Part shown: piece after piece, positions 10,080-64,000 of the stretch | Layout of the letters: every line of letters begins with the position of its first letter | Numbering within the stretch: the stretch's first letter is position 1 | NCBI RefSeq assembly: GCF_032444005.1 | Contig: NC_091288.1 | Location: 206,522,001-206,586,000, forward strand | Reading direction: 5' to 3' | Length of the DNA: 64,000 bases | From: Ranitomeya imitator | Lineage: Eukaryota | Program-made: the position numbers and the translations under genes | Notes under the pieces: model-generated | What the model was told of the DNA's origin: nothing | Database searches by the model: none | The model's input: only the letters and a program-made list of their open reading frames with translations

Positions 10080-10830
10080 GCGATGTCGCCATTCTGATCG
10101 CGGCAGACACAGGGCCGCACGGTGCACATATCGGGCAGACATCGATCCGCCGTCCCCAGTCGGTGACAGGTCTCTTCAGAGCCGCCTCTTCCGGTCCCTC
10201 CCGGCCTCCACCAGGGAGAAGACATGACGGCCTCCAAGTGCTCGCGGCTGAGCGGGGAGCTGTCCCGCCGGGTCCTGGCCTCGGTGGACACGGTGCTCTT
10301 TGACTGTGACGGGGTGCTGTGGCGGGGGGACGAGGCGGTGCCGGGGGCCCCGGAGCTGGTCACCGCCCTGCGGAGCAGCGGGAAGCGGGTCTTCTACCTG
10401 ACGAACAACAGCACCAAGACCCGGGCCATGTACGCCGACAAGCTGGGCCGGCTGGGCTTCGGCGCTGAGCCGGGGGAAGTGTTCGGCACCGCGTACTGCA
10501 CGGCCCGGTACCTGCGGGACGAGGCGCGGCTGCAGGGCAAAGTCTATCTGATCGGTGGCACGGCGCTGAGCCGGGAGCTGGAGGCGGCGGGGATCCCGCA
10601 TGTGGGGAGCGGCCCGGAGCCGGTGACCGGCGGCATGAAGGACTGGGCGGCGCTGGAGAAGGACCCGGATGTGCGGGCGGTGGTGGTCGGCTTCGACGAG
10701 CATTTCAGCTACATGAAACTGACGCGGGCGCTCCGCTATCTGCAGGACCCGGACTGCCTGTTCATCGCCACCAACACCGACTCCCGCCTGCCGCTGGAGG
10801 GAGGACGCGTCATCCCCGGTACTGACCTGA
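10080..10830. promoter_or_regulatory. CpG-rich island over the PGP 5' end and exon 1
   Basis: GC and CpG density are visibly high compared with the AT-rich flanks. It covers the start codon region. Confidence 0.6.
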
Positions 10831-13800
10831 CGCGACTGAAGGAGACGCCGCTCTGCCTCCTTTATAAAGACTGACCTTGTTTCCCGTAGCAACCTATCAG
10901 AGCGCAGCTTATAGTTGTACTGAATTGAAAGCTGCGCTCTGATTGGCAGCACTGGGTAACTAGGACAGTTGTCTCTTGAAACTGATTTTTGATTGGTTGC
11001 TATGGGTTACTGGAGCAGGGTTCTGTTAAATCTGAGCTGGGATTGGTTGCTATGGTAACTAGGGCAGGTTTCTGTTAAAACTAAGCTGGGATTGGTTGCT
11101 ATGGTAACTAGGGCAGCTTTTCCCGTTAACGTAGGTCTTATAAACGAGGCGCTATAGAAATGTCACAATGTCTGACTGACACTGGCCACAATTGAATGGA
11201 AAAATGCCGTCAGTTACGTCAGACGTGTCAGTTTCCCACTGAAAAGATATTGGGCCGTGTTGAATTGGGTAAAGTTTAATCAAGCTTTAGAATTTTCACA
11301 CCACAAAAATAAAATAACTGATTGTGACAGAGGAGGAAATGTCTCCGTCCCGTCCGGGCGCTGTTGTGTCACCGTCGCTCGGCTCGTTACTTCACATCTT
11401 GTGCATGACTGGTGGCCGGTGACACATGGAAACACGACGGCGTCTCTGTGTCCGGTTATATCACCCTGTTCACACTTGCATACAATCACAGACGACACCC
11501 GCGGGGCCGGAGCCGGCACCCGACAACGGCCCAGATCTCTCTGTGTGTTCATTGCTGGACTTATTGCTTCCTCTTTTGGTTCTGGTGGAACATGACCGCT
11601 GCAGCCTATCGGAGACTGCCTGCAGCGGTCACGAGGAAGCCTACGGGAGTCACAGGCAGCACTGGAGGAATGGCAATAGTCACATTGATGAGAATGGTTT
11701 ATTTCTCAGCGCCCTGGGCCAGATCTTCAGGTAAAAATGAGTCTAGGACGACCCCTGTGAGCCGCCACGCACTAGAGATTTAGGCCGATTTAGACAAAGT
11801 GCGTTCATCCATCAGCAGCGCCTTTTCTTGGCTCAAACCAGCGTCACAGATGGAGCCGATGGCAGATATGTTCGATCTTTTCCCGCTTGGTGATCTAATT
11901 GACTTATAGGGATTGGTGTTGAACAACAGATCTATATTCCGTCAGCCGAAGACCGGGCTGTAATAAAGACTGAGCCGTCGGTTTCTCTAGATTGACCACT
12001 AGATTGTGGTATTGTCATCCAAGATGGCGACCTTCACTGGACGAGATTTTCAGAAATCTGTCTGAGGTCCCTAATGTGCGTCCAGCATTATCTTGGCCTA
12101 ATGTGATAATCCGTGTCAACATAACTGTATGATCCTTTATACAAGTTAAACTCAATGTCTGCCCACTAGCCAAATTGACAGCTCAGTGCCCCTCCTCCCA
12201 GCTGCTGAATCTGTCAACATTGCCTGATTGACAGCTCCTCAGTGCTCCTCCTCCCTACTGCAGAATATCCAGCCATCTAGCATGATTGACAGCTCCTCAG
12301 TGCCCCTCCTCTCTGCTGCGGAATCTCCACCCACCTTATCCTGATGGACAGCTCCTCAGTGCCCCTCCTCTCTGCTGCGGAATCTCCAGCCATCATGATT
12401 CACAGCTCTTCTGTGCTGCAGAATAGAATATCCAGCCATCTAGCATGATTGACAGATCCTCAGTGCCCCTCCTTCCAGCTGCTGAATCTGTCAACATTGC
12501 CTGATTGACCGCTCCTCAGTGCCCCTCCTCCCTACTGCAGAACATCCAGCCATCTAGCATGATTGACAGCTCCTCAGTGCTCCTCCATGAAGCAGAATCC
12601 CCACCCACCTTATCCTGATGGACAGCTCCTCAGTGCCCCTCCTCTCTGCTGCAGAATCTCCAGCCATCATCATTGACAGCTCCTCTGTGCTGCAGAATAG
12701 AATATCCAGCCATCTAGCATGATTGACAGATCCTCAGTGTCCCTCCTCCCAGCTGCGGAATCTCCATGCACCTTAGCCTGATTGACAGCTCCTCAGTGCC
12801 CCTCCTCCCTGCTGCAGAATATCCACCCACCTTAGCATAATTGACTGCTCCTCAGTGCCCCTCCTCCCTGCTGCATAATCTCCACCCACCTTAGCTTAAT
12901 TGACAGCTCAGAGTCCCTCCTCCCTCCTGCAGTCTCTCCACCCACCCACCTGATTTACAGCTCCTCAGCGCCCCTCTTCCCTGCTGCGTAATCTTCACCC
13001 ACCCACCTGATTGACAGCTCCTCAGTGCCCCTAATTTCTGCTGCTGAATCTCTGCCCACCTTAGCCCAATTGACAGCTCCTCAGTGCCCCTCCTCCCTGC
13101 TGCAGAATACCCACCTTAGCCTGATTGACAACTCCTCAGTGCCCCTCATCCCTTCTGCTGAATCTCCACCCACCTTAGCCTGATTGACAGCTCCTCAGTG
13201 CCCCTCCTCCCTGCTGCGGAATCTCCAGCCACCCACCTGATTGACAGCTCCTGAGTGTCCCCTCTCCCTGCTGCGAAATTTCCACCCACATTAGCCTGAT
13301 TGACAGCTCCTCAGTGCCCCTCATCCCTTCTGCTGAATATCCACCCACCATAGCCTGATTGACAGATCCTCAGTGCCCCTCCTCCCTGCTGCGGACCCTC
13401 CACCCACCTTAGCCTGATTGACAGCTCCTCAGTGCCCCTCCTCACTGCTGCAGAATATCCACCCACCTTTTCTTTAGAAACGCTCAGACTTTTTATCAGT
13501 TGTCCTTCTGTTTTTTAGGAACCGGCTGCATGGTGCGAGCAGTGGAAACTGCAGCTCATCGCAAAGCCCAGGTCATCGGGAAGCCCAACTCCTTCCTCTA
13601 CGACTGCGTAGTCAAAGAATGTGGCTTGGATCCGTCAAGGACTGTGATGGTGGGAGATCGCCTGGACACAGACATTCAGATGGGCTCCACCTGCGGGATC
13701 CGAACACTCCTGACCCTGACCGGATTCTCCAGCCTGGAGGAGGCAAAGTCCCACCAAGAAAACGGCTCCCTCTCCTTGGTCCCGGACTTCTACGTGGACT

Positions 13801-13844
13801 CTGTGGCCGACCTGCTTCCGGCACTGTCTCCTGCTGATCAGTGA
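10224..13844 (+). CDS. PGP: Phosphoglycolate / glycerol-3-phosphate phosphatase (HAD class IIA), 306 aa
   Basis: Exon 1 is 10224-10818 (donor G|GTACTG) and exon 2 is 13519-13844 (acceptor TTTTTTAG|GA). Total 921 nt, in frame. HAD motif I DCDGVLW, TNNSTK, GKP and motif [10 protein letters not shown] are present. Adjacency to BRICD5 and MLST8 matches the known human cluster and favours PGP over PDXP. Confidence 0.95.
12170..13470. repeat. Degenerate minisatellite of about 59 bp in the PGP intron
   Basis: Unit TTGACAGCTCCTCAGTGCCCCTCCTCCCTGCTGCAGAATCTCCACCCACCTTAGCCTGA; TTGACAG at 13359 and 13418. Confidence 0.9.
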
Positions 13845-20500: not shown

Positions 20501-35350
<14,850 letters not shown>

Positions 35351-41800: not shown

Positions 41801-43644
41801 TGGGGTTGTTGGAGTTCAGATCGTACATCCGGATGTGCTGATATCCTAGGAACAGGAGCACAGGGCCGAGGAGGATTAGGAAACCAGGTGAATGCAATGT
41901 GTAGAATACAAGAGGTAAGGCAGAATCATAAGATAAATTACATAGTAATGAGGGTCATCCAGGACCCTCAACGATTAGCAGAATGAAGGGGTGAAGTGCT
42001 CACTGGGGCACAGCAATGTCAGTTATACGTACGCCTGGCTCCACTGCAACACCAGACACAGCCGCAGATATATGTCCTGTCAGGTACTACGGGGGACCAT
42101 TAGGAATCAAAGTTATCAAACATTGAAGCTTATCCTTAAAGGGGTTAGAATCGCTTACTTCTGCATAGGGAGGTCGGAGGGTCTGCTAAGGGGGCTCTGA
42201 CGACCAATTGATAGGTCTCGACCGCCGCCCAAAAGTATCATGTACAAGACCAACTCTAATCGGACAGGTGTATAACACCTTATGCTTGTGCATGAGGCCG
42301 TCACCGAAACACCAGCTGCACCCCTTATCTCCCAATATGAAAGTGAAAATCACCAGTTAACCCCTTAAAGATCCCTATTCACAAAATATTGATCTTGATC
42401 AAGCCAGCCAATCATCTAACATGTATGAAGTAGAAAAGGTGCACATCGATTCACAGGACCCCGGCCCATGTCTATAATCTGGGGTCACTGGACAGAAGCC
42501 CTAAGAATCGCTTCCTATCGGACGGCATCCCCGACTTCTGTTTCAATTCGCCAGCCTGGCGCGACATCAGCATTGTGGTGTGAAGCACATGTGACATCGC
42601 ACGTGGCTCGTTAATCAATAGAAGGGCCATAGATGCTGGCAGGTAGGAAGCGGGTCCCAGGGCTCTTGTCTGGTGACCACAGATTATTGATAGGGATACT
42701 TGACCAGATCAATAAAACGTTTTGCACCATCTCTTGTGTGAGGGGATTCATGACCCTCCCTCAAAGTCTGGATTTAACCATCCGTCAGGGGCAACTGATC
42801 TGACAGGCGCAGCTCACTTAGTTTAATTTCTCTATTTTCAGTGGTTTGTCTGGGAAACACCATACTTTTCTGGTTATTAAACATTTTTTTTTTTTTACAC
42901 CTGATTATGTGTATTCTCATTTATTACATTCTTATTAAGGTAACTGATCACTTTTAGAGCATTGAAATTTAAAAAAAAGGAAAATATAGCCAATTTTCTA
43001 GCCTGTGCTGGACATGCGCAATGCCCCTAAACTCGTTATGAAACATATTGCCCCTGAGGGAGGGTTAAACATCAGAAATTCATAATTCTGAGTACGGACC
43101 GCAGTGTCCAGACTAGTTGTCCCCAAATTCAACAGACTCCTATATTCCTTTGTATTCCACTTTCCCCATTCGGCCGCACTAAGCGAGGTTGTGTATGGGG
43201 GGAGTTCGCCTGACCGCTATCTAAGGAGTATGGCCGCCCCTTATCAGACAGAAATCACGGTCACTCACCTGCAGCTGCAATCATGCTGCGATCTGGAGTC
43301 ACTTCCAGAGAGTTCACTTGCTAAAACTTTCAGTCAAGGAACACAATGAAGCAGAAACAAAACCTGCAGGAGGTCAGACACACTGCTGAACATTAGGACT
43401 AGAAACAAAGGAATGGACAAAAAAAAACAAAACAAAACACAACTGTATTCGACAATCATCTCTCCCGGACGACTAGTCCTGCCCTATCATGAAGAAAATG
43501 TGTGAAGGATACAGAGTCCTGGTGCTGCACGGTCCGCGTACAGATGCCGCTATGGGCTTGCCAAAACCTCACCGTGTGGTCATATCCGGCTGTGGCGAGA
43601 ATGACGGGATCACTGCCCACCGTGCCCTGTGATGAGTTCAACAT
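35819..43644 (-). CDS. MLST8: Target of rapamycin complex subunit LST8 (WD40), complete CDS, 327 aa
   Basis: Exons 43513-43644, 43269-43320, 41683-41845, 40896-40971, 38334-38486, 37525-37649, 37257-37420, 35819-35937. All are GT-AG and in phase. They translate to [33 protein letters not shown] ... [17 protein letters not shown], nearly identical to human mLST8. Confidence 0.97.
35971..37215. repeat. 86-bp minisatellite filling the last MLST8 intron
   Basis: Unit TACACAGTGACTGCACCAGCAGAATAGTGAGTGCAGCTCTGGAGTATAATACAGGATGTAACTCAGGATCAGTAATGTAATGTATG. ORF starts are offset by exactly 86 (36363, 36449, 36535...). Confidence 0.95.
39386..39743. mobile_element. PIF/Harbinger-type MITE in an MLST8 intron
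   Basis: TAA|GGCTAGGTTCATATTGCGTT ... AACGCAATATGAACCAAGCC|TAA. It has a 3-bp TAA duplication and an internally palindromic, GC-rich body. Confidence 0.8.
39900..40029. repeat. 65-bp direct tandem duplication
   Basis: GAGATATCAAGCAGAAATCAAAACACAAAAGGACTCAATTCAGCATTTACAAAAGTCCCTTTTCCT-type unit present twice. Confidence 0.85.
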
Positions 43645-51300: not shown

Positions 51301-52344
51301 GCCTTGTTTTCATGCGACACTGTCACTCTATTTCTTTCAGAGTATTATCATATTTAAGGTCTTAATATTTTAACCTCATTTGGTCCAAATTCTATCTATT
51401 TCCCACCATTGATGTCCCAGGTTATACCCCCTTAGTTTGTAGGTCCGGCTGTGGGCACCACAAACACCCCAAGTGATGTGTGTTTGTTTGTGCCCACAGC
51501 CTGACCTAAAATAGTGTCCAGTTGTGGGCACTGGAAACACCCCAAGTCACAGGTATTAGCCGGTGCCTTCAACCGGACCTAAATTAGGGTCTGGCTGTGG
51601 GCACGATAAACACCCCAAGTTTCTGGTGTATGCTGATGCCCAAAGCCAGACCTAAAATAGGAGTAGAATTTGGCAGACTTTTATTGGAGCATTGATTCCC
51701 TTATGGTAGGCTGTACCGAGAGCTGTCAAACTGATCTGATATAGACATGCATGCTCAAACTTCTGGTATGTTGTCAGAGGCCGTTAAGGTAAGGGTTACC
51801 TAATTACTCTATAGCCTTGGTGACACTTGCAGGATCCACTGGTAATCTAGATGAACACATACACATTTGATAAAAGCCAACTTCAGCAGGAATGACCAGT
51901 CCTTTGATGTGTGATCGGAAACTTGGGATTTCAATGGCCGGTCCTTATGTGTTCAGGGAAGATAATCCGATAGCAGAACTTCCTCACAGAAGTTTTATGC
52001 CCTCTCCCCATTGACACAATCGCTCGCTCGGCCAACAGCTTTCTCACGCGTATGACCAGCTTAAAAGGTTTGTTCACCTTTAAGAACATTTTTTTTATTT
52101 CAGTGCATATATTTGGGCCTAGAAATAGTTTTTGCAATTGGGTTTCATAAAAAAACTTTGCTCTGTTTGACTTTTACGCTCTTGGTTTCCTGCACATTCC
52201 TGGAGGTGGTCTGACCTCCTTATAGTATCAATGGCAGGTAGCACCAAGTGACAGTAAAGGGAATTGATATGAAATGTACACAGGAAAACTGCAAAGCTTT
52301 ATTATGCAACGTATAGCACACAATTGCCAAAACCAGAATATCCC

Positions 52345-52787: not shown

Positions 52788-52898
52788 GAGTTTTGCCAGC
52801 CAGTACATCCTATAGCCTCGTCTCCCCATATCAGTTTGCAGGTGCCGGCTTTGGTTTCACCTTTGTATTTGTTTCCATTGTTTCTTATTTCCGTAGAG

Positions 52899-55800
52899 AT
52901 GCCTTCCATGAGGAGAATTCAGTATCTGCGCCTTGGCGTCCTGGCCATTCTGGTGCTGGCTTTGATAAAGTTTATGTATCAAGGCAGGTGAGTGATCTTC
53001 CCACGCTATCATGAGTTTCTCAGCCTTTGGCCTTTTCACACCTGATTTTAGAAACCAACCACCTTGGAGGCAAGGAAATACACCAGCCGTTTGTAAAGTC
53101 TCCTACTACCCTATGTAAAATGTATATTATGTGCCCATTATAGAGCTGGTGTGTCCTTACTGGGCCCCATCAAGTACCCAAATTACAAGGTGTCCCACTA
53201 GCACTCCCAGCAGTCAGCTGTGGGACAGATGTATAATTTCCCTACAGCTCCCCCACAGGAGGAGCTGAGTATTACTACACATTGCTCTGTGTAATCTGTG
53301 GACCATCTTCTTCAACCGGCCCTCGAATCCCGGCATCCTGGGGGCCACTTCTGATTACTAGACCTTGCGTGACGTCATAACATGAGCTTAGTAATCAGAA
53401 GAGGCCAGCCGTGGATGCCATACTAGGCTCCTGCAAATCTTTTTACCAAACTCCAGATAACATTAAAGAGTAACTAAACTTTCTTATACATTTTTCACAA
53501 TTAGAAGGCACCTGATTCATCTGCAGATTGGTGGGGTCCGGGTCCTGAACCTCAACCGCCCCCCCCCCCCCTTCCCGATCAAGCAATGGACCCCCGAGAA
53601 GTAGGCAGCTCAGCAGACCGGAGCGCACAGGCAGACCGGAATAGAAAGCAGGGGCTCACTTCTCGGGGGTCTATTGCGTGATCGTAGGGGATTTCAGGAC
53701 CTGGATGCCCACCAATCTGCAGGTGGTTCAGGTCTCTGCTAAATATGAAAAATCAAGAAGAAAATGGAGTTATTTTCTAATTCCCGTTTGTGACCTAGGA
53801 CCTTTATGAATAAGGCGGCCAGCATAGAGGGGTAGATAGGTATTTCATGACTTACTGCCATAGGGCTGTGTCTAAATGTTCTGGCCCTGGGAGAACGACT
53901 TGTTGGTGCCCACTGGGAACACATCATCCAATGCCAACTCCTTCTGTAAAATGGGGAGACCTCCTGGAGGGGTTGGCAGGAGTCGGGAGAGAAGGCTGCC
54001 GGAGGAGTCGGGAGAGAAGGCTGCCGGAGGAGTCGGGAGGGAAGGCTGCCGGAGGAGTCGGGAGGGAAGGCTGCCGGAGGAGTCGGGAGAGAAGGCTGCC
54101 GGAGGAGTCGGGAGGGAAGGCTGCCGGAGGAGTCGGGAGGGAAGGCTGCCGGAGGAGTCGGGAGGGAAGGCTGCCGGAGGAGTCGGGAGGGAAGGCTGCC
54201 GGAGGAGTCGGGAGGGAAGGCTGCCGGAGGAGTCGGGAGGGAAGGCTGCCGGAGGAGTCGGGAGGGAAGGCTGCCGGAGGAGTCGGGAGGGAAGGCTGCC
54301 GGAGGAGTCGGGAGAGAAGGCTGCCGGAGGAGTCGGGAGAGAAGGCTGCCGGAGGAGTCTGAACCATTGCTCGCCCTACAGCTGTCTATTGTTTGTGGGG
54401 CTCCTGAATCATAGGTTTCGGGATAAGTGTTCGTTCTAGGTCATCCTAATGCCTTTTTATCGTTATTATTATTTTTTTATTATGTTTTTCTTTTATCGTG
54501 CTATTATATTCCGCAGCGCTTTACATATATTATCACTGTCCCCATTGGGTCTGACAATCTAAATTCCCTAGCAGTATGTCTTTGGAGTATGGGAGGAAAC
54601 CGGAGTACCCGGAGGAAACCCACGCCAATGCGGGGAGAACATATGTCTGTATGGCAGCATTGTCTATAGCATTGTAAAGAATAAAAAGAGCCAGCCCTCC
54701 AGTAGACTGGGCAGAGGAAACAGTAGACTGTATGTACCCCCTGTGGGGACGTTTGGGTTCACACTCCGTCTGTCCATCTCTCCATCTTATCATTTTTTAT
54801 TTCGGTTTGAGCAGATATTGTTCTCATTTTCTTGCCTTCAGTCCTCCCCAGGTGACACAGGCCATAAAGGTAAAAAGCAGGGTTGACTCGTTTTGGGGTC
54901 CGAAAGTGGAAAGTCCGATAGACCCAATTATCAAGGACCTTGCGCCGGAGCCGCCACGTGAGGAGGATACAGTCCTTCAGTCAAAGATGAAGAAAGTGGC
55001 CGGAAAGATGGTGAAAGATTTCAGTCATATTGAGATGAAGCTAGTCCACCTGGATCTGAAGGGAGCGCCCCCAAAAGTGTCCTACTACGAGCAGGTGAGA
55101 GGACCGGCTTATATGGTTCCTGCTATTTGGGTCCTGCGACTGGCCGGAAGCTTCACACCACGTGGAGACCAATGGTTGTGATGCCAAATGGTGCAGCCGT
55201 TGGGTGTCGGGTCTGATTATTAAAGCAAAATTGGAAACAGCCCAGGGTGACTGTGAAACAGAGGAGCGGTTGGAGGCCAGAGATGCCACAGGGGATGGCA
55301 CCATGGCGTACGTCCCAATGCTGAAGGACAAGACCGAGGCACAGCGAGCACAACAAGGCTTACAGATCCAGATATTCCACAGCCTGAACCTGCGCCCATC
55401 TTAAAATAATATCCCTAATAAATCCCTGTATTGTTCCTACATAGCTTAATATCCCTTTTATGGCCTCCATGCAGTATGACGCCCCTCTTACATATTGCTG
55501 CACCCACATTGTCCCCGACACATTGATGCCCTCACATTATTTACCCACAAGGTATGATGCACCTAAATAGTATCATGCCCCCACCAATCTCACCACTGCA
55601 CAGTATTATGACCCCCACAGTCCTCCCCCACACAGTGTGATGCACCCACACAATATGATATGCCCTGGAGTACCCCCACTAAATATCATGTCCCTCAGCC
55701 TCCTCCTCACAGTATGATATCTCTGCAGTTCTCCACACAATATGTTGCCCCCACAATCTTCTCCAACCTCTTTGTAAGGAGAACGCTGACGATCATGTCC

Positions 55801-55969
55801 GTGGCTGATGTACAGTGGGCCCGTAGCCCGGTGACCTGCTGCCTTTTGTCCCCTGTTAGATGTTCCCACTTCTCTCCAAGCTCGGGGCTAACGGCCTGCT
55901 GATCGAATACGAGGACATGTTTCCGTTCAGTGGAGAATTGTCCGTCCTGAAGTCTCCGTATGCTTACAG
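52899..55969 (+). CDS. HEXD: Hexosaminidase D (GH20)-like protein with N-terminal signal anchor, 5' partial; continues beyond the window
   Basis: Exons 52899-52987 ([29 protein letters not shown], phase 2), 54842-55094 (stem plus [21 protein letters not shown]) and 55860-55969 ([36 protein letters not shown]). Matches human [44 protein letters not shown]. It may be a paralog rather than the true ortholog. Confidence 0.85.
53975..54358. repeat. 25-bp purine-rich minisatellite in a HEXD-like intron
   Basis: Unit GGAGGGAAGGCTGCCGGAGGAGTCG. Confidence 0.95.
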
Positions 55970-56156
55970 GTGAGGGGCCGTAGTCACAACGTGCGACCAC
56001 CCGGCCATCATTGTAAAGGGGGGCAGCGAAAACTATTGTATTGAAGGACTAGAGTCTATAGATTGTGCGTGCATGCTGGGAATTGTAGTTTCTGAAGGCC
56101 AATGGCACAATTGTACTAGACACGTAAAGGTCGTATAATGACTGGGGGACAGCGAA

Positions 56157-58878
56157 GATCTCCAGTGCCACAGTATAAGCAGGCTACAGCAGAGCAGACT
56201 CCAGTGCCGCAGTATAAGCAGGCTACAGCAGAGCAGACTCCAGTGCCACAGTATAAGCAGGCTACAGCAGAGCAGACTCCAGTGCCACATTATAAGCAGG
56301 CTACAGCAGAGCAGACTCCAGTGCCACAGTATAAGCAGGCTACAGCAGAGCAGACTCCAATGCAGCATTATACACAGGCTACAGCAGAGCAGACTTCAGT
56401 GCCGCATTATAAGCAGGCTACAGCAGAGCAGACTCCAGTGCCACAGTATAAGCAGGCTACAGCATAGCAGACTCCAGTGCCACATTATAAGCAGGCTACA
56501 GCATAGCAGACTCCAGTGCCACAGTATAAGCAGGCTACAGCAGAGCAGACTCCAGTGCCACAGTATAAGCAGGCTACAGCAGAGCAGACTCCAGTGCCAC
56601 ATTATAAGCAGGCTACAGCATAGCAGACTCCAGTGCCACAGTATAAGCAGGCTACAGCAGAGCAGACTCCAGTGCCACATTATAAGCAGGCTACAGCAGA
56701 GCAGACTCCAGTGCCACAGTATAAGCAGGCTACAGCAGAGCAGACTCCAATGCAGCATTATACACAGGCTACAGCAGAGCAGACTTCAGTGCCGCATTAT
56801 AAGCAGGCTACAGCAGAGCAGACTCCAGTGCCACAGTATAAGCAGGCTACAGCAGAGCAGACTCCAATGCAGCATTATACACAGGCTACAGCAGAGCAGA
56901 CTTCAGTGCCGCATTATAAGCAGGCTACAGCAGAGCAGACTCCAGTGCCACAGTATAAGCAGGCTACAGCATAGCAGACTCCAGTGCCACATTATAAGCA
57001 GGCTACAGCATAGCAGACTCCAGTGCCACAGTATAAGCAGGCTACAGCAGAGCAGACTCCAGTGCCACAGTATAAGCAGGCTACAGCAGAGCAGACTCCA
57101 GTGCCACATTATAAGCAGGCTACAGCAGAGCAGACTCCAGTGCCACAGTATAAGCAGGCTACAGCAGAGCAGACTCCAGTGCCACATTATAAGCAGGCTA
57201 CAGCATAGCAGACTCCAGTGCCACAGTATAAGCAGGCTACAGCAGAGCAGACTCCAATGCAGCATTCTACACAGGCTACAGCAGAGCAGACTCCAGTGCC
57301 GTATTATAAGCAGGCTACAGCAGAGCAGACTCCAGTGCCACAGTATAAGCAGGCTACAGCAGAGCAGACTCCAGTGCCACTGTATAAGCAGGCTACAGCA
57401 GAGCAGACTCCAAAGCAGCATTATACACAGGCTGCAGCAGAGCAGACTCCAGTGCCACATTATAAGCAGGCTACAGCAGAGCAGACTCCAGTGCCACAGT
57501 ATAAGCAGGCTACAGCAGAGCAGACTCCAGTGCCGCAGTATAAGCAGGCTACAGCAGAGCAGACTCCAGTGCCACAGTATAAGCAGGCTACAGCAGAGCA
57601 GACTCCAGTGCCACATTATAAGCAGGCTACAGCAGAGCAGACTCCAGTGCCACAGTATAAGCAGGCTACAGCAGAGCAGACTCCAATGCAGCATTATACA
57701 CAGGCTACAGCAGAGCAGACTTCAGTGCCGCATTATAAGCAGGCTACAGCAGAGCAGACTCCAGTGCCACAGTATAAGCAGGCTACAGCATAGCAGACTC
57801 CAGTGCCACATTATAAGCAGGCTACAGCATAGCAGACTCCAGTGCCACAGTATAAGCAGGCTACAGCAGAGCAGACTCCAGTGCCACAGTATAAGCAGGC
57901 TACAGCAGAGCAGACTCCAGTGCCACATTATAAGCAGGCTACAGCATAGCAGACTCCAGTGCCACAGTATAAGCAGGCTACAGCAGAGCAGACTCCAGTG
58001 CCACATTATAAGCAGGCTACAGCAGAGCAGACTCCAGTGCCACAGTATAAGCAGGCTACAGCAGAGCAGACTCCAATGCAGCATTATACACAGGCTACAG
58101 CAGAGCAGACTTCAGTGCCGCATTATAAGCAGGCTACAGCAGAGCAGACTCCAGTGCCACAGTATAAGCAGGCTACAGCAGAGCAGACTCCAATGCAGCA
58201 TTATACACAGGCTACAGCAGAGCAGACTTCAGTGCCGCATTATAAGCAGGCTACAGCAGAGCAGACTCCAGTGCCACAGTATAAGCAGGCTACAGCATAG
58301 CAGACTCCAGTGCCACATTATAAGCAGGCTACAGCATAGCAGACTCCAGTGCCACAGTATAAGCAGGCTACAGCAGAGCAGACTCCAGTGCCACAGTATA
58401 AGCAGGCTACAGCAGAGCAGACTCCAGTGCCACATTATAAGCAGGCTACAGCAGAGCAGACTCCAGTGCCACAGTATAAGCAGGCTACAGCAGAGCAGAC
58501 TCCAGTGCCACATTATAAGCAGGCTACAGCATAGCAGACTCCAGTGCCACAGTATAAGCAGGCTACAGCAGAGCAGACTCCAATGCAGCATTCTACACAG
58601 GCTACAGCAGAGCAGACTCCAGTGCCGTATTATAAGCAGGCTACAGCAGAGCAGACTCCAGTGCCACAGTATAAGCAGGCTACAGCAGAGCAGACTCCAG
58701 TGCCACTGTATAAGCAGGCTACAGCAGAGCAGACTCCAATGCAGCATTATACACAGGCTGCAGCAGAGCAGACTCCAGTGCCACATTATAAGCAGGCTAC
58801 AGCAGAGCAGACTCCAGTGCCACAGTATAAGCAGGCTACAGCAGAGCAGACTCCAGTGCCACAGTATAAGCAGGCTAC
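56157..58878. repeat. 39-bp minisatellite array with a 1326-bp higher-order duplication
   Basis: Unit CAGAGCAGACTCCAGTGCCACAGTATAAGCAGGCTACAG, giving 13-aa periodic ORFs. Confidence 0.95.
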
Positions 58879-58879
58879 C

Positions 58880-61800
58880 TGTTGTGAATTCTGTGGCAGA
58901 GCTCCCTCCTGTGGTCACAAGTGGTACTTCGGCTGATTCTCTCTGTGAGCTTCCGTTAGTGGAGGGAAGTGGTACTGCGGCTTCTGAGTTTCCTCCCTCA
59001 GGTGATGTGGTGAGGTCGTTAGGTGCTGCTCTACTTAACTCCACCTAGTGCTTTGATCCTGGCTTCCTGTCAATGTTCCAGTATTGGACTTGTTTTCCTC
59101 CTAGATCGTTCCTGTGGCCTGCTGCTCTGCATAGCTAAGTTTTCCTTTGCTATTTTGTTTGCTTTTCTTCTGTCCAGCTTATCTATTCGTTTGCTGGAAG
59201 CTCTGGGACGCAGAGGGTGTACCTCCGTGCCGTTAGTTCGGTACGGAGGGTCTTTTTGTCCCCCTTTGCGTGGTTTTTAGGGTTTTGTGTGGACCGCAAA
59301 GTTACCTTTCCTATCCTCGCTCTGTTCAGAAAGTCGGGCCTCACTTTGCTAAATCTATTTCATCTCTACGTTTGTCTTTTCATCTTTTCTCACAGTCATT
59401 ATATGTGGGGGGCTGCCTTTTCCTTTGGGGTATTTCTCTGAGGCAAGGTAGGCTTATTTTCTATCTTCAGGCTAGCTAGTTTCTCAGGCTGTGCCGAGTT
59501 GCATAGGGAGCGTTAGGCGCAATCCACGGCTGCCTCTAGTGTTGTTGGAGAGGATTGGGGATTGCGGTCAACAGAGTTCCCACGTCTCAGAGCTCGTTCT
59601 ATGTTTTTGGGTTATTGTCAGATCACTGTATGTGCTCTGACCTCTCTGTCCATTGTGGTACTGAATTGCCTAAACATAACAGTACAGGAAGCCAAAGTAC
59701 TAATGATTCTCAATAGAGGGAAAAAAGAAGTTCTGAGACCATTTTTTTTTCTCTGCACTGTGTTTTGCCTTTTTTTTTCCCCTAGACATTTGGGTGGTTC
59801 AGGACACAGGTGTAGCAATGGACATTAGAAGTCTGTCTTCATGTGTGGATCAGCTCTCGGCAAGAGTACAAAAGATTCAAGACACTATTGATCAGAAATC
59901 TATGTTAGAACCAAGAATTCCTATTCCTGATTTGTTTTTTGGAGATAGAACTAAGTTTCTGAGTTTCAAAAATAATTGTAAACTATTTCTGGCCTTGAAA
60001 CCTCGCTCCTCTGGTGATCCAGTTCAACAGGTTTTGATCATTATTTCTTTTTTGCGTTGCGACCCTCAGGACTGGGCATTTTCTCTTGCGCCAGGAGATC
60101 CTGCATTAAGTAATATCGATGCGTTTTTCCTGGCACTCGGATTGCTGTACGATGAACCTAATTCAGTGGATCAGGCAGAAACAAATTTGCTGGCTCTTTG
60201 TCAGGGTCAGGATGAGATAGAGTTATATTGTCAGAAATTTAGAAAGTGGTCCGTGCTCACTCAATGGAATGAATCTGCGCTGGCAGCTATGTTCAGAAAG
60301 GGTCTCTCTGAAGCCCTTAAGGATGTCATGGTGGGATTTCCTATGCCTGCTGGTTTGAATGAGTCTATGTCTTTGGCCATTCAGATTGGTCGACGCTTGC
60401 GTGAGCGTAAATCTGTGCACCATTTGGCGGTATCACCTGAGCCTATGCAGTGCGATAGGACTTTGACCAGAGTTGAACGGCAAGAACACAGACGTCTGAA
60501 TGGGCTGTGTTTCTACTGTGGTGATTCCACTCATGCTATCTCTGATTGTCCTAAGCGCACTAAGCAGTTCGCTAGGTCTGCCACCATTGGTACGGTACAG
60601 TCAAAATTTCTTCTGTCCGTTACCTTGATATGCTCTTTGTCGTCGTTTTCTGTCATGGCGTTTGTGGATTCGGGCGCTGCCCTGAATCTGATGGATTTGG
60701 ATTATGCTAAGCGTTGTGGGTTTTTCTTGGAGCCCTTGCAGTGTCCTATTCCATTGAGAGGAATTGATGCTACGCCTTTGGCCAAGAATAAGCCTCAATA
60801 CTGGACCCAGCTGACCATGTGCATGGCTCCTGCACATCAGGAGGTTATTCGCTTTCTGGTGTTGCATAATCTGCATGATGTGGTCGTGTTGGGGTTGCCA
60901 TGGCTACAAGTCCATAATCCAGTATTAGATTGGAAATCCATGTCGGTGTCCAGCTGGGGTTGTCAGGGGGTACATGGTGATGTTCCATTTCTGTCAATTT
61001 CGTCATCCACCCCTTCTGAGGTTCCAGAGTTCTTGTCTGATTACCGGGATGTATTTGATGAGCCCAAGTCCGATACCCTACCTCCGCATAGGGATTGTGA
61101 TTGTGCTATCAATTTGATTCCTGGTAGTAAATTCCCAAAAGGTCGATTGTTTAATTTATCCGTGCCTGAGCACACCGCTATGCGGAGTTACGTGAAGGAG
61201 TCCTTGGAGAAGGGGCATATTCGCCCGTCATCGTCGCCATTAGGAGCAGGGTTCTTTTTTGTAGCCAAGAAGGATGGTTCGCTGAGACCTTGTATAGATT
61301 ACCGACTTCTAAATAAGATCACGGTTAAATTTCAGTACCCCTTGCCGTTGTTATCTGATTTGTTTGCTCGGATTAAGGGGGCTAGTTGGTTCACCAAGAT
61401 AGATCTTCGTGGTGCGTATAATCTGGTGCGAATTAAGCAAGGCGATGAATGGAAAACTGCATTTAATACGCCCGAGGGTCATTTTGAGTATCTAGTAATG
61501 CCATTCGGACTTGCCAATGCTCCATCAGTGTTTCAGTCCTTTATGCATGACATCTTCCGAGAGTACCTGGATAAATTCCTGATTGTGTACTTGGATGACA
61601 TTTTGATCTTCTCGGATGATTGGGAGTCTCATGTGAAGCAGGTCAGAACGGTTTTTCAGGTCCTGCGTGCTAATTCTTTGTTTGTGAAGGGATCAAAGTG
61701 TCTCTTTGGTGTGCAGAAGGTTTCATTTTTGGGGTTCATCTTTTCCCCTTCTACTATCGAGATGGATCCTGTTAAGGTCCAAGCCATCCATAATTGGCCT

Positions 61801-63983
61801 CAGCCGACATCTCTGAAAAGTCTGCAAAAGTTCCTGGGCTTTGCTAATTTTTATCGTCGCTTCATCTGCAATTTTTCTAGTATTGCTAAACCATTGACCG
61901 ATTTGACCAAGAAGGGTGCTGATGTGGTCAATTGGTCTTCTGCTGCTGTGGAGGCTTTTCAAGAGTTGAAGCGTCGTTTTTCTTCTGCCCCTGTGTTGTG
62001 TCAACCAGATGTTTCTCTTCCGTTCCAGGTCGAGGTTGATGCTTCTGAGATTGGAGCAGGGGCTGTTTTGTCGCAGAGAGGTTCTGATTGCTCAGTGATG
62101 AAACCGTGCGCCTTCTTTTCCAGGAAGTTTTCGCCTGCTGAGCGAAATTATGATGTGGGCAACCGAGAGTTGCTGGCCATGAAGTGGGCATTCGAGGAGT
62201 GGCGTCATTGGCTTGAAGGAGCTAAGCATCGCGTGGTGGTATTGACTGATCATAAGAACTTGACTTATCTCGAGTCTGCCAAGCGGTTGAATCCTAGACA
62301 GGCTCGTTGGTCGCTGTTTTTTGCCCGTTTTGACTTTGTGATTTCGTACCTTCCGGGCTCTAAAAATGTGAAGGCGGATGCTCTGTCTAGGAGTTTTGTG
62401 CCCGACTCTCCGGGTTTGTCTGAGCCGGCGGGTATCCTCAAGGAAGGAGTAATTGTGTCTGCCATCTCCCCTGATTTGCGGCGAGTGCTGCAAAAATTTC
62501 AGGCTAATAAACCTGATCGTTGTCCAGTGGAGAAACTGTTTGTCCCTGATAGGTGGACGAATAAAGTTATCTCTGAGGTTCATTGTTCGGTCTTGGCTGG
62601 TCATCCTGGAATCTTTGGTACCAGAGAGTTAGTGGCTAGATCCTTTTGGTGGCCATCTCTGTCGCGGGATGTGCGTACTTTTGTGCAGTCCTGTGGGATT
62701 TGTGCTCGGGCTAAGCCCTGCTGTTCTCGTGCCAGTGGGTTGCTTTTGCCCTTGCCAGTCCCGAAGAGGCCTTGGACACATATCTCTATGGATTTTATTT
62801 CAGATCTTCCCGTTTCTCAAAAGATGTCAGTCATTTGGGTGGTCTGTGATCGCTTTTCTAGGATGGTCCATCTGGTACCCTTGTCTAAATTGCCTTCCTC
62901 CTCTGATTTGGTGCCATTGTTCTTCCAGCATGTGGTTCGTTTACATGGCATTCCAGAGAATATCGTTTCTGACAGAGGTTCCCAGTTTGTTTCGAGGTTT
63001 TGGCGAGCTTTTTGTGGTAGGATGGGCATTGACTTGTCTTTTTCCTCGGCTTTCCATCCTCAGACTAATGGCCAGACCGAACGAACCAATCAGACCTTGG
63101 AAACATATCTGAGATGCTTTGTTTCTGCTGATCAGGATGACTGGGTGTCCTTTTTGCCGTTGGCTGAGTTCGCCCTTAATAATCGGGCCAGCTCGGCTAC
63201 CTTGGTTTCGCCATTTTTCTGCAACTCTGGGTTCCATCCTCGTTTCTCGTCAGGACAGGTTGAGTCTTCGGACTGTCCTGGTGTGGATACTGTGGTGGAC
63301 AGGTTGCAGCAGATTTGGACTCAGGTAGTGGACAATTTGACCTTGTCCCAGGAGAAGGCTCAACGTTTTGCTAATCGCAGACTCTGTGTGGGTCCCCGAC
63401 TTCGTGTTGGGGATCTGGTTTGGTTATCTTCTCGTCATATTCCTATGAAGGTTTCCTCTCCTAAATTTAAACCTCGTTTCATTGGTCCGTATAGGATTTC
63501 TGAGGTTCTTAATCCTGTGTCTTTTCGTCTGACCCTTCCAGATTCTTTTTCCATACATAACGTATTCCATAGGTCATTGTTGCGGAGATACGTGGCACCT
63601 ATGGTTCCATCTGTTGACCCTCCTGCCCCGGTTTTGGTGGAGGGGGAGTTGGAGTATATTGTGGAGAAGATTTTGGATTCTCATGTTTCAAGACGGAAAC
63701 TCCAGTATCTGGTTAAGTGGAAGGGTTATGCTCAGGAAGATAATTCCTGGGTCTTTGCCTCTGATGTCCATGCTCCCGATCTTGTTCGTGCCTTTCATGT
63801 GGCTCATCCTGGTCGGCCTGGGGGCTCTGGTGAGGGTTCGGTGACCCCTCCTCAAGGGGGGGGGTACTGTTGTGAATTCTGTGGCAGAGCTCCCTCCTGT
63901 GGTCACAAGTGGTACTTCGGCTGATTCTCTCTGTGAGCTTCCGTTGGTGGAGGGAAGTGGTACTGCGGCTTCTGAGTTTCCTC
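58880..63983 (+). mobile_element. Ty3/Gypsy chromovirus LTR retrotransposon
   Basis: The 5' LTR starts TGTTGTGAATTC at 58880 and probably ends ...CATAACA at 59681. A polypurine tract AAGGGGGGGGG lies just before the 3' LTR start at 63868. The 3' LTR matches the 5' LTR only to 63983. Confidence 0.95.
59818..63924 (+). CDS. Gag-Pol polyprotein, single uninterrupted ORF
   Basis: Capsid (PDLFFGDRTKF), CCHC knuckle (CFYCGDSTHAISDC), protease (FVDSGA), RT (YLDDILIFS), RNase H (VDAS...TDHKNL), integrase (HCSVLAGH..CGIC; MDF..SDRGSQF..QTER), chromodomain (YIVEKILD...YLVKWKGY..EDNSW). First ATG at 59818. Confidence 0.95.
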   Translation: MDIRSLSSCVDQLSARVQKIQDTIDQKSMLEPRIPIPDLFFGDRTKFLSFKNNCKLFLALKPRSSGDPVQQVLIIISFLRCDPQDWAFSLAPGDPALSNIDAFFLALGLLYDEPNSVDQAETNLLALCQGQDEIELYCQKFRKWSVLTQWNESALAAMFRKGLSEALKDVMVGFPMPAGLNESMSLAIQIGRRLRERKSVHHLAVSPEPMQCDRTLTRVERQEHRRLNGLCFYCGDSTHAISDCPKRTKQFARSATIGTVQSKFLLSVTLICSLSSFSVMAFVDSGAALNLMDLDYAKRCGFFLEPLQCPIPLRGIDATPLAKNKPQYWTQLTMCMAPAHQEVIRFLVLHNLHDVVVLGLPWLQVHNPVLDWKSMSVSSWGCQGVHGDVPFLSISSSTPSEVPEFLSDYRDVFDEPKSDTLPPHRDCDCAINLIPGSKFPKGRLFNLSVPEHTAMRSYVKESLEKGHIRPSSSPLGAGFFFVAKKDGSLRPCIDYRLLNKITVKFQYPLPLLSDLFARIKGASWFTKIDLRGAYNLVRIKQGDEWKTAFNTPEGHFEYLVMPFGLANAPSVFQSFMHDIFREYLDKFLIVYLDDILIFSDDWESHVKQVRTVFQVLRANSLFVKGSKCLFGVQKVSFLGFIFSPSTIEMDPVKVQAIHNWPQPTSLKSLQKFLGFANFYRRFICNFSSIAKPLTDLTKKGADVVNWSSAAVEAFQELKRRFSSAPVLCQPDVSLPFQVEVDASEIGAGAVLSQRGSDCSVMKPCAFFSRKFSPAERNYDVGNRELLAMKWAFEEWRHWLEGAKHRVVVLTDHKNLTYLESAKRLNPRQARWSLFFARFDFVISYLPGSKNVKADALSRSFVPDSPGLSEPAGILKEGVIVSAISPDLRRVLQKFQANKPDRCPVEKLFVPDRWTNKVISEVHCSVLAGHPGIFGTRELVARSFWWPSLSRDVRTFVQSCGICARAKPCCSRASGLLLPLPVPKRPWTHISMDFISDLPVSQKMSVIWVVCDRFSRMVHLVPLSKLPSSSDLVPLFFQHVVRLHGIPENIVSDRGSQFVSRFWRAFCGRMGIDLSFSSAFHPQTNGQTERTNQTLETYLRCFVSADQDDWVSFLPLAEFALNNRASSATLVSPFFCNSGFHPRFSSGQVESSDCPGVDTVVDRLQQIWTQVVDNLTLSQEKAQRFANRRLCVGPRLRVGDLVWLSSRHIPMKVSSPKFKPRFIGPYRISEVLNPVSFRLTLPDSFSIHNVFHRSLLRRYVAPMVPSVDPPAPVLVEGELEYIVEKILDSHVSRRKLQYLVKWKGYAQEDNSWVFASDVHAPDLVRAFHVAHPGRPGGSGEGSVTPPQGGGYCCEFCGRAPSCGHKWYFG

Positions 63984-64000
63984 ATTGTAGATTGTAAGCT

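Follow-up and report, generated by a model that had tools for sequence, protein, structure and literature searches.

For the nematode enzymes of GH20 subfamily 1, a cytoplasmic, a transmembrane and a stem domain have been described, and these enzymes trim N-acetylglucosamine (GlcNAc) and/or N-acetylgalactosamine (GalNAc) from N-glycans (PMC11308363). The succession of an anchor, a stem and a GH20 domain is already known from nematode members of the subfamily. For vertebrates, the 2024 paper on the nematode enzyme HEX-2 names only hexosaminidase D (HEXD), the biological role of which is described as uncertain (PMC11308363). The present analysis deals with a stretch of 64,000 nucleotides (nt) of the frog Ranitomeya imitator (NC_091288.1, positions 206,522,001 to 206,586,000 of the forward strand), hereafter called the window, and with a gene which begins within it and whose first coding exons include one for a putative membrane anchor. 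With a probability of about 0.8, the window holds the 5' part of an anchored GH20 subfamily-1 hexosaminidase, i.e., an ancient duplicate of HEXD that was apparently lost in mammals. The mechanism proposed is the following: (i) the first 94 residues would form a basic tail in the cytosol, an uncleaved signal-anchor helix and a flexible stem; (ii) the catalytic domain, itself intact, would thereby lie on the lumenal side of the membranes of the secretory pathway; (iii) HEXD would have been duplicated before the split between sharks and bony vertebrates; (iv) jawed vertebrates other than mammals would have retained the anchored copy, flanked by MLST8 and CASKIN1, and mammals would apparently have lost it.

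Three exons of the anchored gene lie in the window (Table 1). Read directly from the sequence and joined by a script (52899-52987, 54842-55094 and 55860-55969), they have canonical splice sites and fitting phases, and give a peptide of 150 amino acids (aa). The remainder of the gene is outside the window, which thus encodes 150 of 570 residues. The start motif of the GH20 domain stands at residue 95 of the joined peptide, i.e., after an N-terminal extension of 94 aa. The exon coordinates, the match between the phase-2 donor and the phase-2 acceptor and the 94-aa extension, all put forward in an earlier note made from the letters of this DNA, are borne out by this reading. An alternative acceptor at 54852 was rejected: it reads directly into a stop codon.

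The acceptor of the anchor exon is found two bases 5' of the ATG; therefore this exon is not the first one of the transcript and at least one 5' exon precedes it. The mini-exon found by motif search at 52052-52067 is a possible candidate, in R. imitator, for an alternative upstream coding exon. Joined to 52897, it would extend the reading frame by MTSLKE ahead of MPSMRR, and MTSLKE-MPSM is the exact N-terminus of R. variabilis isoform X2 (MTSLKEMPSMRR); an exact look-up of this isoform gave no recorded gene. A second start of R. variabilis (MGICQRSTHKE) was not found by motif search within 40-53 kb of the window.

The 150 aa are identical (100%) to residues 1-150 of XP_069590671.1 ("hexosaminidase D-like isoform X1", R. 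imitator, 570 aa), and share 97% identity with the protein of R. variabilis, 89% with that of Dendrobates tinctorius and 86% with that of Phyllobates terribilis. The entry search (phmmer, 84-aa exon peptide) gave 7 matches only, the peptide being too short for full-length relatives. Nevertheless, this exon peptide alone recovers the protein of Eleutherodactylus coqui (E = 4e-27; cluster mate XP_066432656.1, "hexosaminidase D-like", 571 aa). Among the best 120 matches to the E. coqui protein, the relatives are about 560-580 aa long and are named "hexosaminidase D-like" or "hexosaminidase D". In this same list, anchored relatives are seen in frogs, caecilians, salamanders, turtles, squamates, tuatara, crocodilians and birds, and also in sharks, chimaera, sturgeon, gar, coelacanth and bichir.

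Layout, active site and probable orientation in the membrane

The protein comprises a short basic tail, a single hydrophobic helix (about residues 9-27), a stem of about 65 aa and a GH20 subfamily-1 catalytic domain. This arrangement, as the earlier note had described it, agrees with the following results: (i) the Kyte-Doolittle 19-mer maximum of the joined peptide is 1.97 (residues 7-25); (ii) an N-terminal 19-mer with a hydropathy > 1.6 stands ahead of LVHLDLKG in 108 of the 123 proteins bearing this motif; (iii) the full-length R. imitator protein, as modelled with AlphaFold2 (alignment of 49 sequences, mean predicted local distance difference test, pLDDT, of 83.4), has a helix at residues 3-26 and a stretch of pLDDT < 50, probably disordered, at residues 29-89. 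The TIM barrel is modelled with confidence from residue 95 to about residue 390 and is followed by a helical bundle.

On the basis of its sequence matches, the gene product is a beta-N-acetylhexosaminidase of GH20 subfamily 1 (clade B). PF00728 (Glyco_hydro_20) matches the complete protein of R. imitator with 39.3 bits for a cut-off of 22.3, over residues 146-290, almost all of which are encoded beyond the window. In PDB, HEX-2 of Trichuris suis (8QK1) is the best match both by sequence (E = 2e-75) and by fold (E = 6e-33, TM-score 0.85 by target), the next best being Streptococcus GH20C. The motif HIGSDE occupies residues 230-235 of the full protein, also encoded beyond the window, and HIGxDE is kept in 36 sequences out of 36; in this motif Asp is the polarising residue and Glu the acid/base. 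The catalytic or sugar-binding residues of T. suis HEX-2 are K66, D198, E199, W246, W272, Y274, W348 and Y351 (PMC11308363). They align, in this order, with K103, D234, E235, W283, W309, Y311, W387 and Y390 of the R. imitator protein, and these eight positions are invariant in 49 members of the clade. Since the active-site residues are intact and invariant, the anchored enzyme is very likely to be catalytically active.

The helix is most likely an uncleaved signal-anchor with a cytosolic N-terminus (type II). In R. imitator the charge of the C-terminal flank minus that of the N-terminal flank equals -1, the N-terminal flank containing three Arg and the flank after the helix being less basic. 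According to a crude, window-based count in 113 relatives, 79 have a negative difference (N-in/C-out) and 23 a positive one, the other 11 being neutral.

It is unlikely that the hydrophobic stretch is instead a cleavable signal peptide, the mature enzyme being soluble and either secreted or lysosomal. The uninterrupted core of only about 11-16 residues (L12-I23, then K24) and the basic n-region would suit a signal peptide; however, L10, R11, V14, L15 and K24 are conserved at 90% or more from sharks to frogs (alignment of 49 clade members), and such a strong conservation is generally untypical of signal peptides. Moreover, a polar c-region whose -3/-1 residues are small is not seen by eye: in IKFMYQGS/PP, position -3 is occupied by Tyr or Gln and position +1 by Pro. 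A cytoplasmic, a transmembrane and a stem domain are also ascribed to the closest characterised relatives (PMC11308363). It is the strong conservation of the segment, together with the lack of a usable -3/-1 site, that favours a signal-anchor over a cleaved signal peptide.

The use of N-glycosylation sequons bears on the side of the membrane where the catalytic part is located. This part contains no sequon in the R. imitator protein, and the mean for the anchored clade (113 proteins) is 0.31 vs. about 2 expected by shuffling, i.e., sequons are about six-fold rarer than expected; the corresponding values for the soluble HEXD clade are 0.93 vs. 1.44. Shuffling is a crude null model which ignores conservation and relatedness, and these ratios were given little weight. 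One clade-specific Cys only was found (C443), and there is no clear clade-specific disulfide pair. The depletion could indicate a domain that is never exposed to the glycosylation machinery. In view of how deep the depletion is, a more plausible reading is selection against sequons in a domain that is exposed to this machinery.

The first of these two possibilities would go with a catalytic domain facing the cytosol: the enzyme would then be a counterpart of nucleocytoplasmic HEXD tethered to a membrane, and not a lumenal trimmer. The sister HEXD is nucleocytoplasmic and has a neutral pH optimum (PMC11308363), and the near-lack of sequons, the lack of a clear disulfide pair and the 23 proteins (upon 113) with a positive charge difference point to the same side of the membrane. 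Such an orientation is nevertheless quite improbable: 79 of the 113 proteins have a more positive N-terminal flank, which predicts N-in/C-out, and sequons in a cytosolic domain would be neutral and close to chance, so that a value of about one-sixth of the expectation, even from a crude null, fits lumenal counter-selection better. We infer a type II orientation, with residence in the Golgi or elsewhere in the secretory pathway and with trimming of glycans carrying GalNAc or GlcNAc.

Conservation and transcripts of the anchor exon

The anchor exon of R. imitator is considered real, on support that is strong but indirect. Besides the anchor residues listed above, W48 of the stem is invariant in the 49 clade members, from sharks to frogs. 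Two other species show the three-exon layout, both in phases 2, 0, 2: the exons measure 89/256/110 nt in E. coqui and 95/238/110 nt in the loon Gavia stellata; the exons of both have CAG/gtgag donors and, in each, an acceptor two bases ahead of the ATG.

Concerning transcripts, two frog contigs of the Logan collection, 2467 and 2184 nt long and obtained from different runs, are 99.6% identical and contain an uninterrupted open reading frame (ORF) of 576 aa which spans anchor, stem and GH20 domain; one of them has an in-frame stop upstream. The gene covers many kilobases in the genome, therefore intron-free contigs of this size represent spliced mRNA.

The earlier note had also imagined a soluble isoform, resulting from the skipping of the anchor exon and the use of an internal Met. 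This finds no support: R. imitator isoform X2 retains the anchor and is devoid of residues 445-478, and the anchor-less isoforms predicted in Hyla sarda, Pyxicephalus and Ambystoma use alternative first exons. That the anchor exon would be an artefact of gene prediction, the true start being an internal Met such as M95 as in HEXD, is hardly credible even if anchor-less isoforms are predicted in some amphibians, since exon length, phase and splice sites are shared with a bird and with a frog of a different family, the anchor is kept in 108 of 123 relatives, and in intronless contigs of two runs a single ORF, with an in-frame stop upstream, spans anchor, stem and GH20 domain.

A short FWG motif (F47-W48-G49, positions 54893-54901 of the window) is observed from sharks to frogs in a stem that is otherwise poorly conserved and predicted to be disordered.

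Two vertebrate paralogs and their neighbourhoods

A tree of 45 proteins (IQ-TREE; unrooted, vertebrates only, i.e., neither invertebrate nor cyclostome outgroup) separates a soluble and an anchored clade with 100/100 support, and each clade broadly follows the vertebrate phylogeny. The anchored clade (about 570 aa) contains chimaera and sharks, ray-finned fishes, coelacanth, amphibians and sauropsids. The soluble HEXD clade (typically about 486 aa, within about 465-495 aa; no anchor) extends from sharks to mammals. Its members, collected by searches limited to shorter proteins and by a search with a 491-aa frog protein, were seen in sharks, bichir, lungfish, amphibians, squamates, turtles, crocodilians, birds, platypus, marsupials and placentals. 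A first quick tree agrees on the two clades. Many species carry both genes, on different chromosomes. This is the case for R. imitator, whose own HEXD (XP_069606769.1, 487 aa) is on another chromosome than the anchored gene, and the anchored R. imitator protein does not group with mammalian HEXD. Both clades are present from sharks onward, therefore the duplication is older than the split between cartilaginous and bony vertebrates.

It should be noted that, in the first quick tree, the 5 teleost sequences (sampled from the best-120 lists) all fall in the anchored clade and none in the soluble one. Teleosts may thus have lost true HEXD.

The positions of introns are common to both paralogs: the 110-nt exon is found, with the same phase, in E. 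coqui, Gavia and turtle HEXD. This speaks for a genomic duplication rather than a retrocopy. The neighbours of the two genes differ. In the window, MLST8 and the anchored gene are head-to-head, and PGP is located upstream, further away than MLST8. PGP was identified by Pfam (Hydrolase_6 and Hydrolase_like) and by PDB (252 bits for glycerol-3-phosphate phosphatase vs. 152 bits for pyridoxal phosphatase). In Gavia a 338-aa WD40 gene, HEXD-like and CASKIN1 follow one another; the WD40 gene being read as MLST8, the anchored gene is placed there between MLST8 and CASKIN1. Soluble HEXD of a turtle is flanked by a 2-oxoglutarate-oxygenase gene (OGFOD3-like) and by CYBC1; OGFOD3 and CYBC1, the neighbours of HEXD, are not those of the window gene, which has MLST8 and PGP upstream. 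PGP and MLST8 show that the window corresponds to the neighbourhood of human 16p13.3, where CASKIN1, MLST8, BRICD5 and PGP are adjacent; OGFOD3, HEXD and CYBC1 are adjacent at human 17q25.3. The regions 16p13.3 and 17q25.3 share many duplicate pairs issued from the early vertebrate genome duplications, and the locations of the anchored and soluble genes fit these paralogous regions.

No mammal is present among the best 120 matches to the anchored protein of E. coqui. Mammalian matches, including those of platypus and marsupials, are all named hexosaminidase D and have only 51-53% identity to the anchored query, i.e., the level of the soluble clade; the eight mammals in the trees all belong to that clade. 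On these sequence comparisons, the anchored gene was apparently lost in mammals. The proposal of the earlier note that the gene is a paralog and not the HEXD ortholog agrees with the 100/100 tree, the differing synteny and the presence of both genes in R. imitator, and its idea that mammals have no member of the clade agrees with the identities and tree positions just given. That note had also considered the opposite case, a 1:1 ortholog of HEXD whose anchored form would already be annotated across vertebrates, mammals included: the wide annotation is a fact, the 1:1 orthology and the mammalian part are not.

Several points weigh against the anchored lumenal enzyme as a whole. Concerning the membrane segment, the hydrophobic stretch is of borderline length (about 16-19 aa, with R11 and K24), and 23 of the 113 relatives have the opposite charge bias. 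The near-absence of sequons and the single clade-specific Cys are unusual for a lumenal enzyme. K103 is the only named active-site residue encoded within the window, the others being taken from the RefSeq protein of R. imitator. The spliced transcripts supporting the anchored ORF come from other frogs, none from R. imitator itself, and of 13 sequencing-run matches, which share 12-34% of the words sampled, none is recorded as RNA. Finally, the absence from mammals rests on best-120 match lists and not on mammalian genomes.

The other features of the window are given together with the exons in Table 1. Between PGP and MLST8, one of the Tc1/mariner-type transposase ORFs is 340 aa long and apparently intact. 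The long open frames found on both strands of the 39-nt array (56160-58878) are repeat artefacts. Near-identical open frames of 41-54 aa flank the gag-pol ORF (58884-59048 and 63872-63997) and would fit long terminal repeats.

Table 1. Location of the genes, exons, repeats and gaps in the window (a slash marks the border between exon and intron).
Feature	Position (nt)	Strand	Remarks
PGP (glycerol-3-phosphate / phosphoglycolate phosphatase)	10224..13844	+	coding exons 10224-10874 and 13500-13844
Tc1/mariner-type transposase ORFs	22725-23747, 24563-25657, 26247-27219, 29845-30987		between PGP and MLST8
Assembly gaps	23948-24283, 27479-27800
MLST8, first coding exon	43513..43644	-	best PDB matches "Target of rapamycin complex subunit LST8", E = 2e-25, residues 8-44
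Candidate upstream coding mini-exon	52052..52067	+	ATG ACC AGC TTA AAA G/gt; motif search
Anchor exon	52897..52987	+	acceptor tttccgtag/AG, ATG at 52899, donor AG/gtgagt, phase 2
Coding part of anchor exon	52899-52987	+	89 nt; basic tail (11 aa) and hydrophobic helix (16 letters)
Intron 3' of anchor exon	52988..54841	+
25-nt tandem array	53978-54359		15.3 copies, 98% matches, G-rich; within the intron 52988..54841
Exon of stem and GH20 start	54842..55094	+	253 nt; acceptor ttgccttcag/T (pyrimidine-rich), donor CAG/gtgaga; residues 30-114, including the conserved FWG (residues 47-49)
GH20 exon	55860..55969	+	110 nt; acceptor cctgttag/A, donor CAG/gtgagg; residues 115-150
Following intron, first part	55970..64000	+
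39-nt tandem array	56160-58878		69.7 copies, 92% matches; in the intron after the 110-nt exon
Ty3/gypsy-type gag-pol ORF	59794-63924	+	uninterrupted, 1376 aa; same intron as the 39-nt array

Public annotation and comparison with known systems

The exon model is not new, an identical RefSeq model being already public for R. imitator, and a model of the anchored gene is public for well over a hundred further species. These RefSeq "hexosaminidase D-like" models are automatic predictions; that of R. imitator has no sequence-level difference from the window gene, and the relatives share with it the layout of anchor, stem and GH20 domain. In the literature searched, no functional or evolutionary account of the vertebrate anchored clade was found, nor any statement that vertebrates have two subfamily-1 genes, one of them membrane-anchored and missing from mammals. 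The anchored gene thus appears uncharacterised in that literature, and the novelty lies in the interpretation and not in the gene model; the advance is modest. Databases do not name the anchored gene uniformly: it appears as "hexosaminidase D" for Xenopus, Bombina, Anolis, Pogona, chicken and others, and as "hexosaminidase D-like" elsewhere. Orthology tables based on names would mix both paralogs. It is also a warning that the 570-aa genes of Xenopus, Anolis and chicken are not simply "HEXD".

An anchored sister gene with intact catalytic residues, retained from sharks to birds and with no mammalian counterpart found, offers a natural comparison for the role of the subfamily in vertebrates, and frogs, chicken and zebrafish are tractable models for it. 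Because of the analogy with nematode HEX-2, -3 and -4, the best reading is that the anchored enzyme would trim GalNAc/GlcNAc in the secretory pathway. A more specific proposal can be made only tentatively: the enzyme, anchored on the lumenal side of the Golgi, might trim terminal GalNAc (LacdiNAc) or GlcNAc of glycoproteins as nematode HEX-2/-3/-4 do, and its loss on the mammalian stem might have changed the glycan processing of vertebrates. The anchored form resembles the invertebrate layout and might show what soluble HEXD evolved from. The trees being unrooted, an ancestral rather than a gained anchor is argued solely from the nematode layout.

The comparison with known systems leads to the following picture. 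Vertebrate HEXD (HEXD/HEXDC), nucleocytoplasmic and also of GH20 subfamily 1, has about 50-53% identity to the anchored protein in the catalytic part and shares with the anchored clade the HIGxDE motif and the intron positions. On the contrary, HEXD has neither anchor nor stem and starts about 8-30 residues ahead of LVHLDLKG. HEXD is present in mammals, whereas the anchored gene was not found there in the best-120 lists. The insect fused lobes (FDL) enzyme offers an analogous idea, i.e., a membrane-bound hexosaminidase trimming GlcNAc from N-glycans in the secretory pathway (PMC11308363), but FDL belongs to GH20 subfamily 2 (HEXA/HEXB type) and is no close relative of the anchored gene. The nematode members of GH20 subfamily 1 (HEX-2 to HEX-5 of Caenorhabditis elegans, HEX-2 of T. 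suis) form a clearly separated clade inside the subfamily (PMC11308363) and are only about 31% identical to the anchored protein. The trimming of N-glycans and LacdiNAc has been shown experimentally for these enzymes, whereas the vertebrate anchored clade is known from sequence. Nevertheless, the substrate-binding residues of the nematode enzymes are conserved in the anchored protein.

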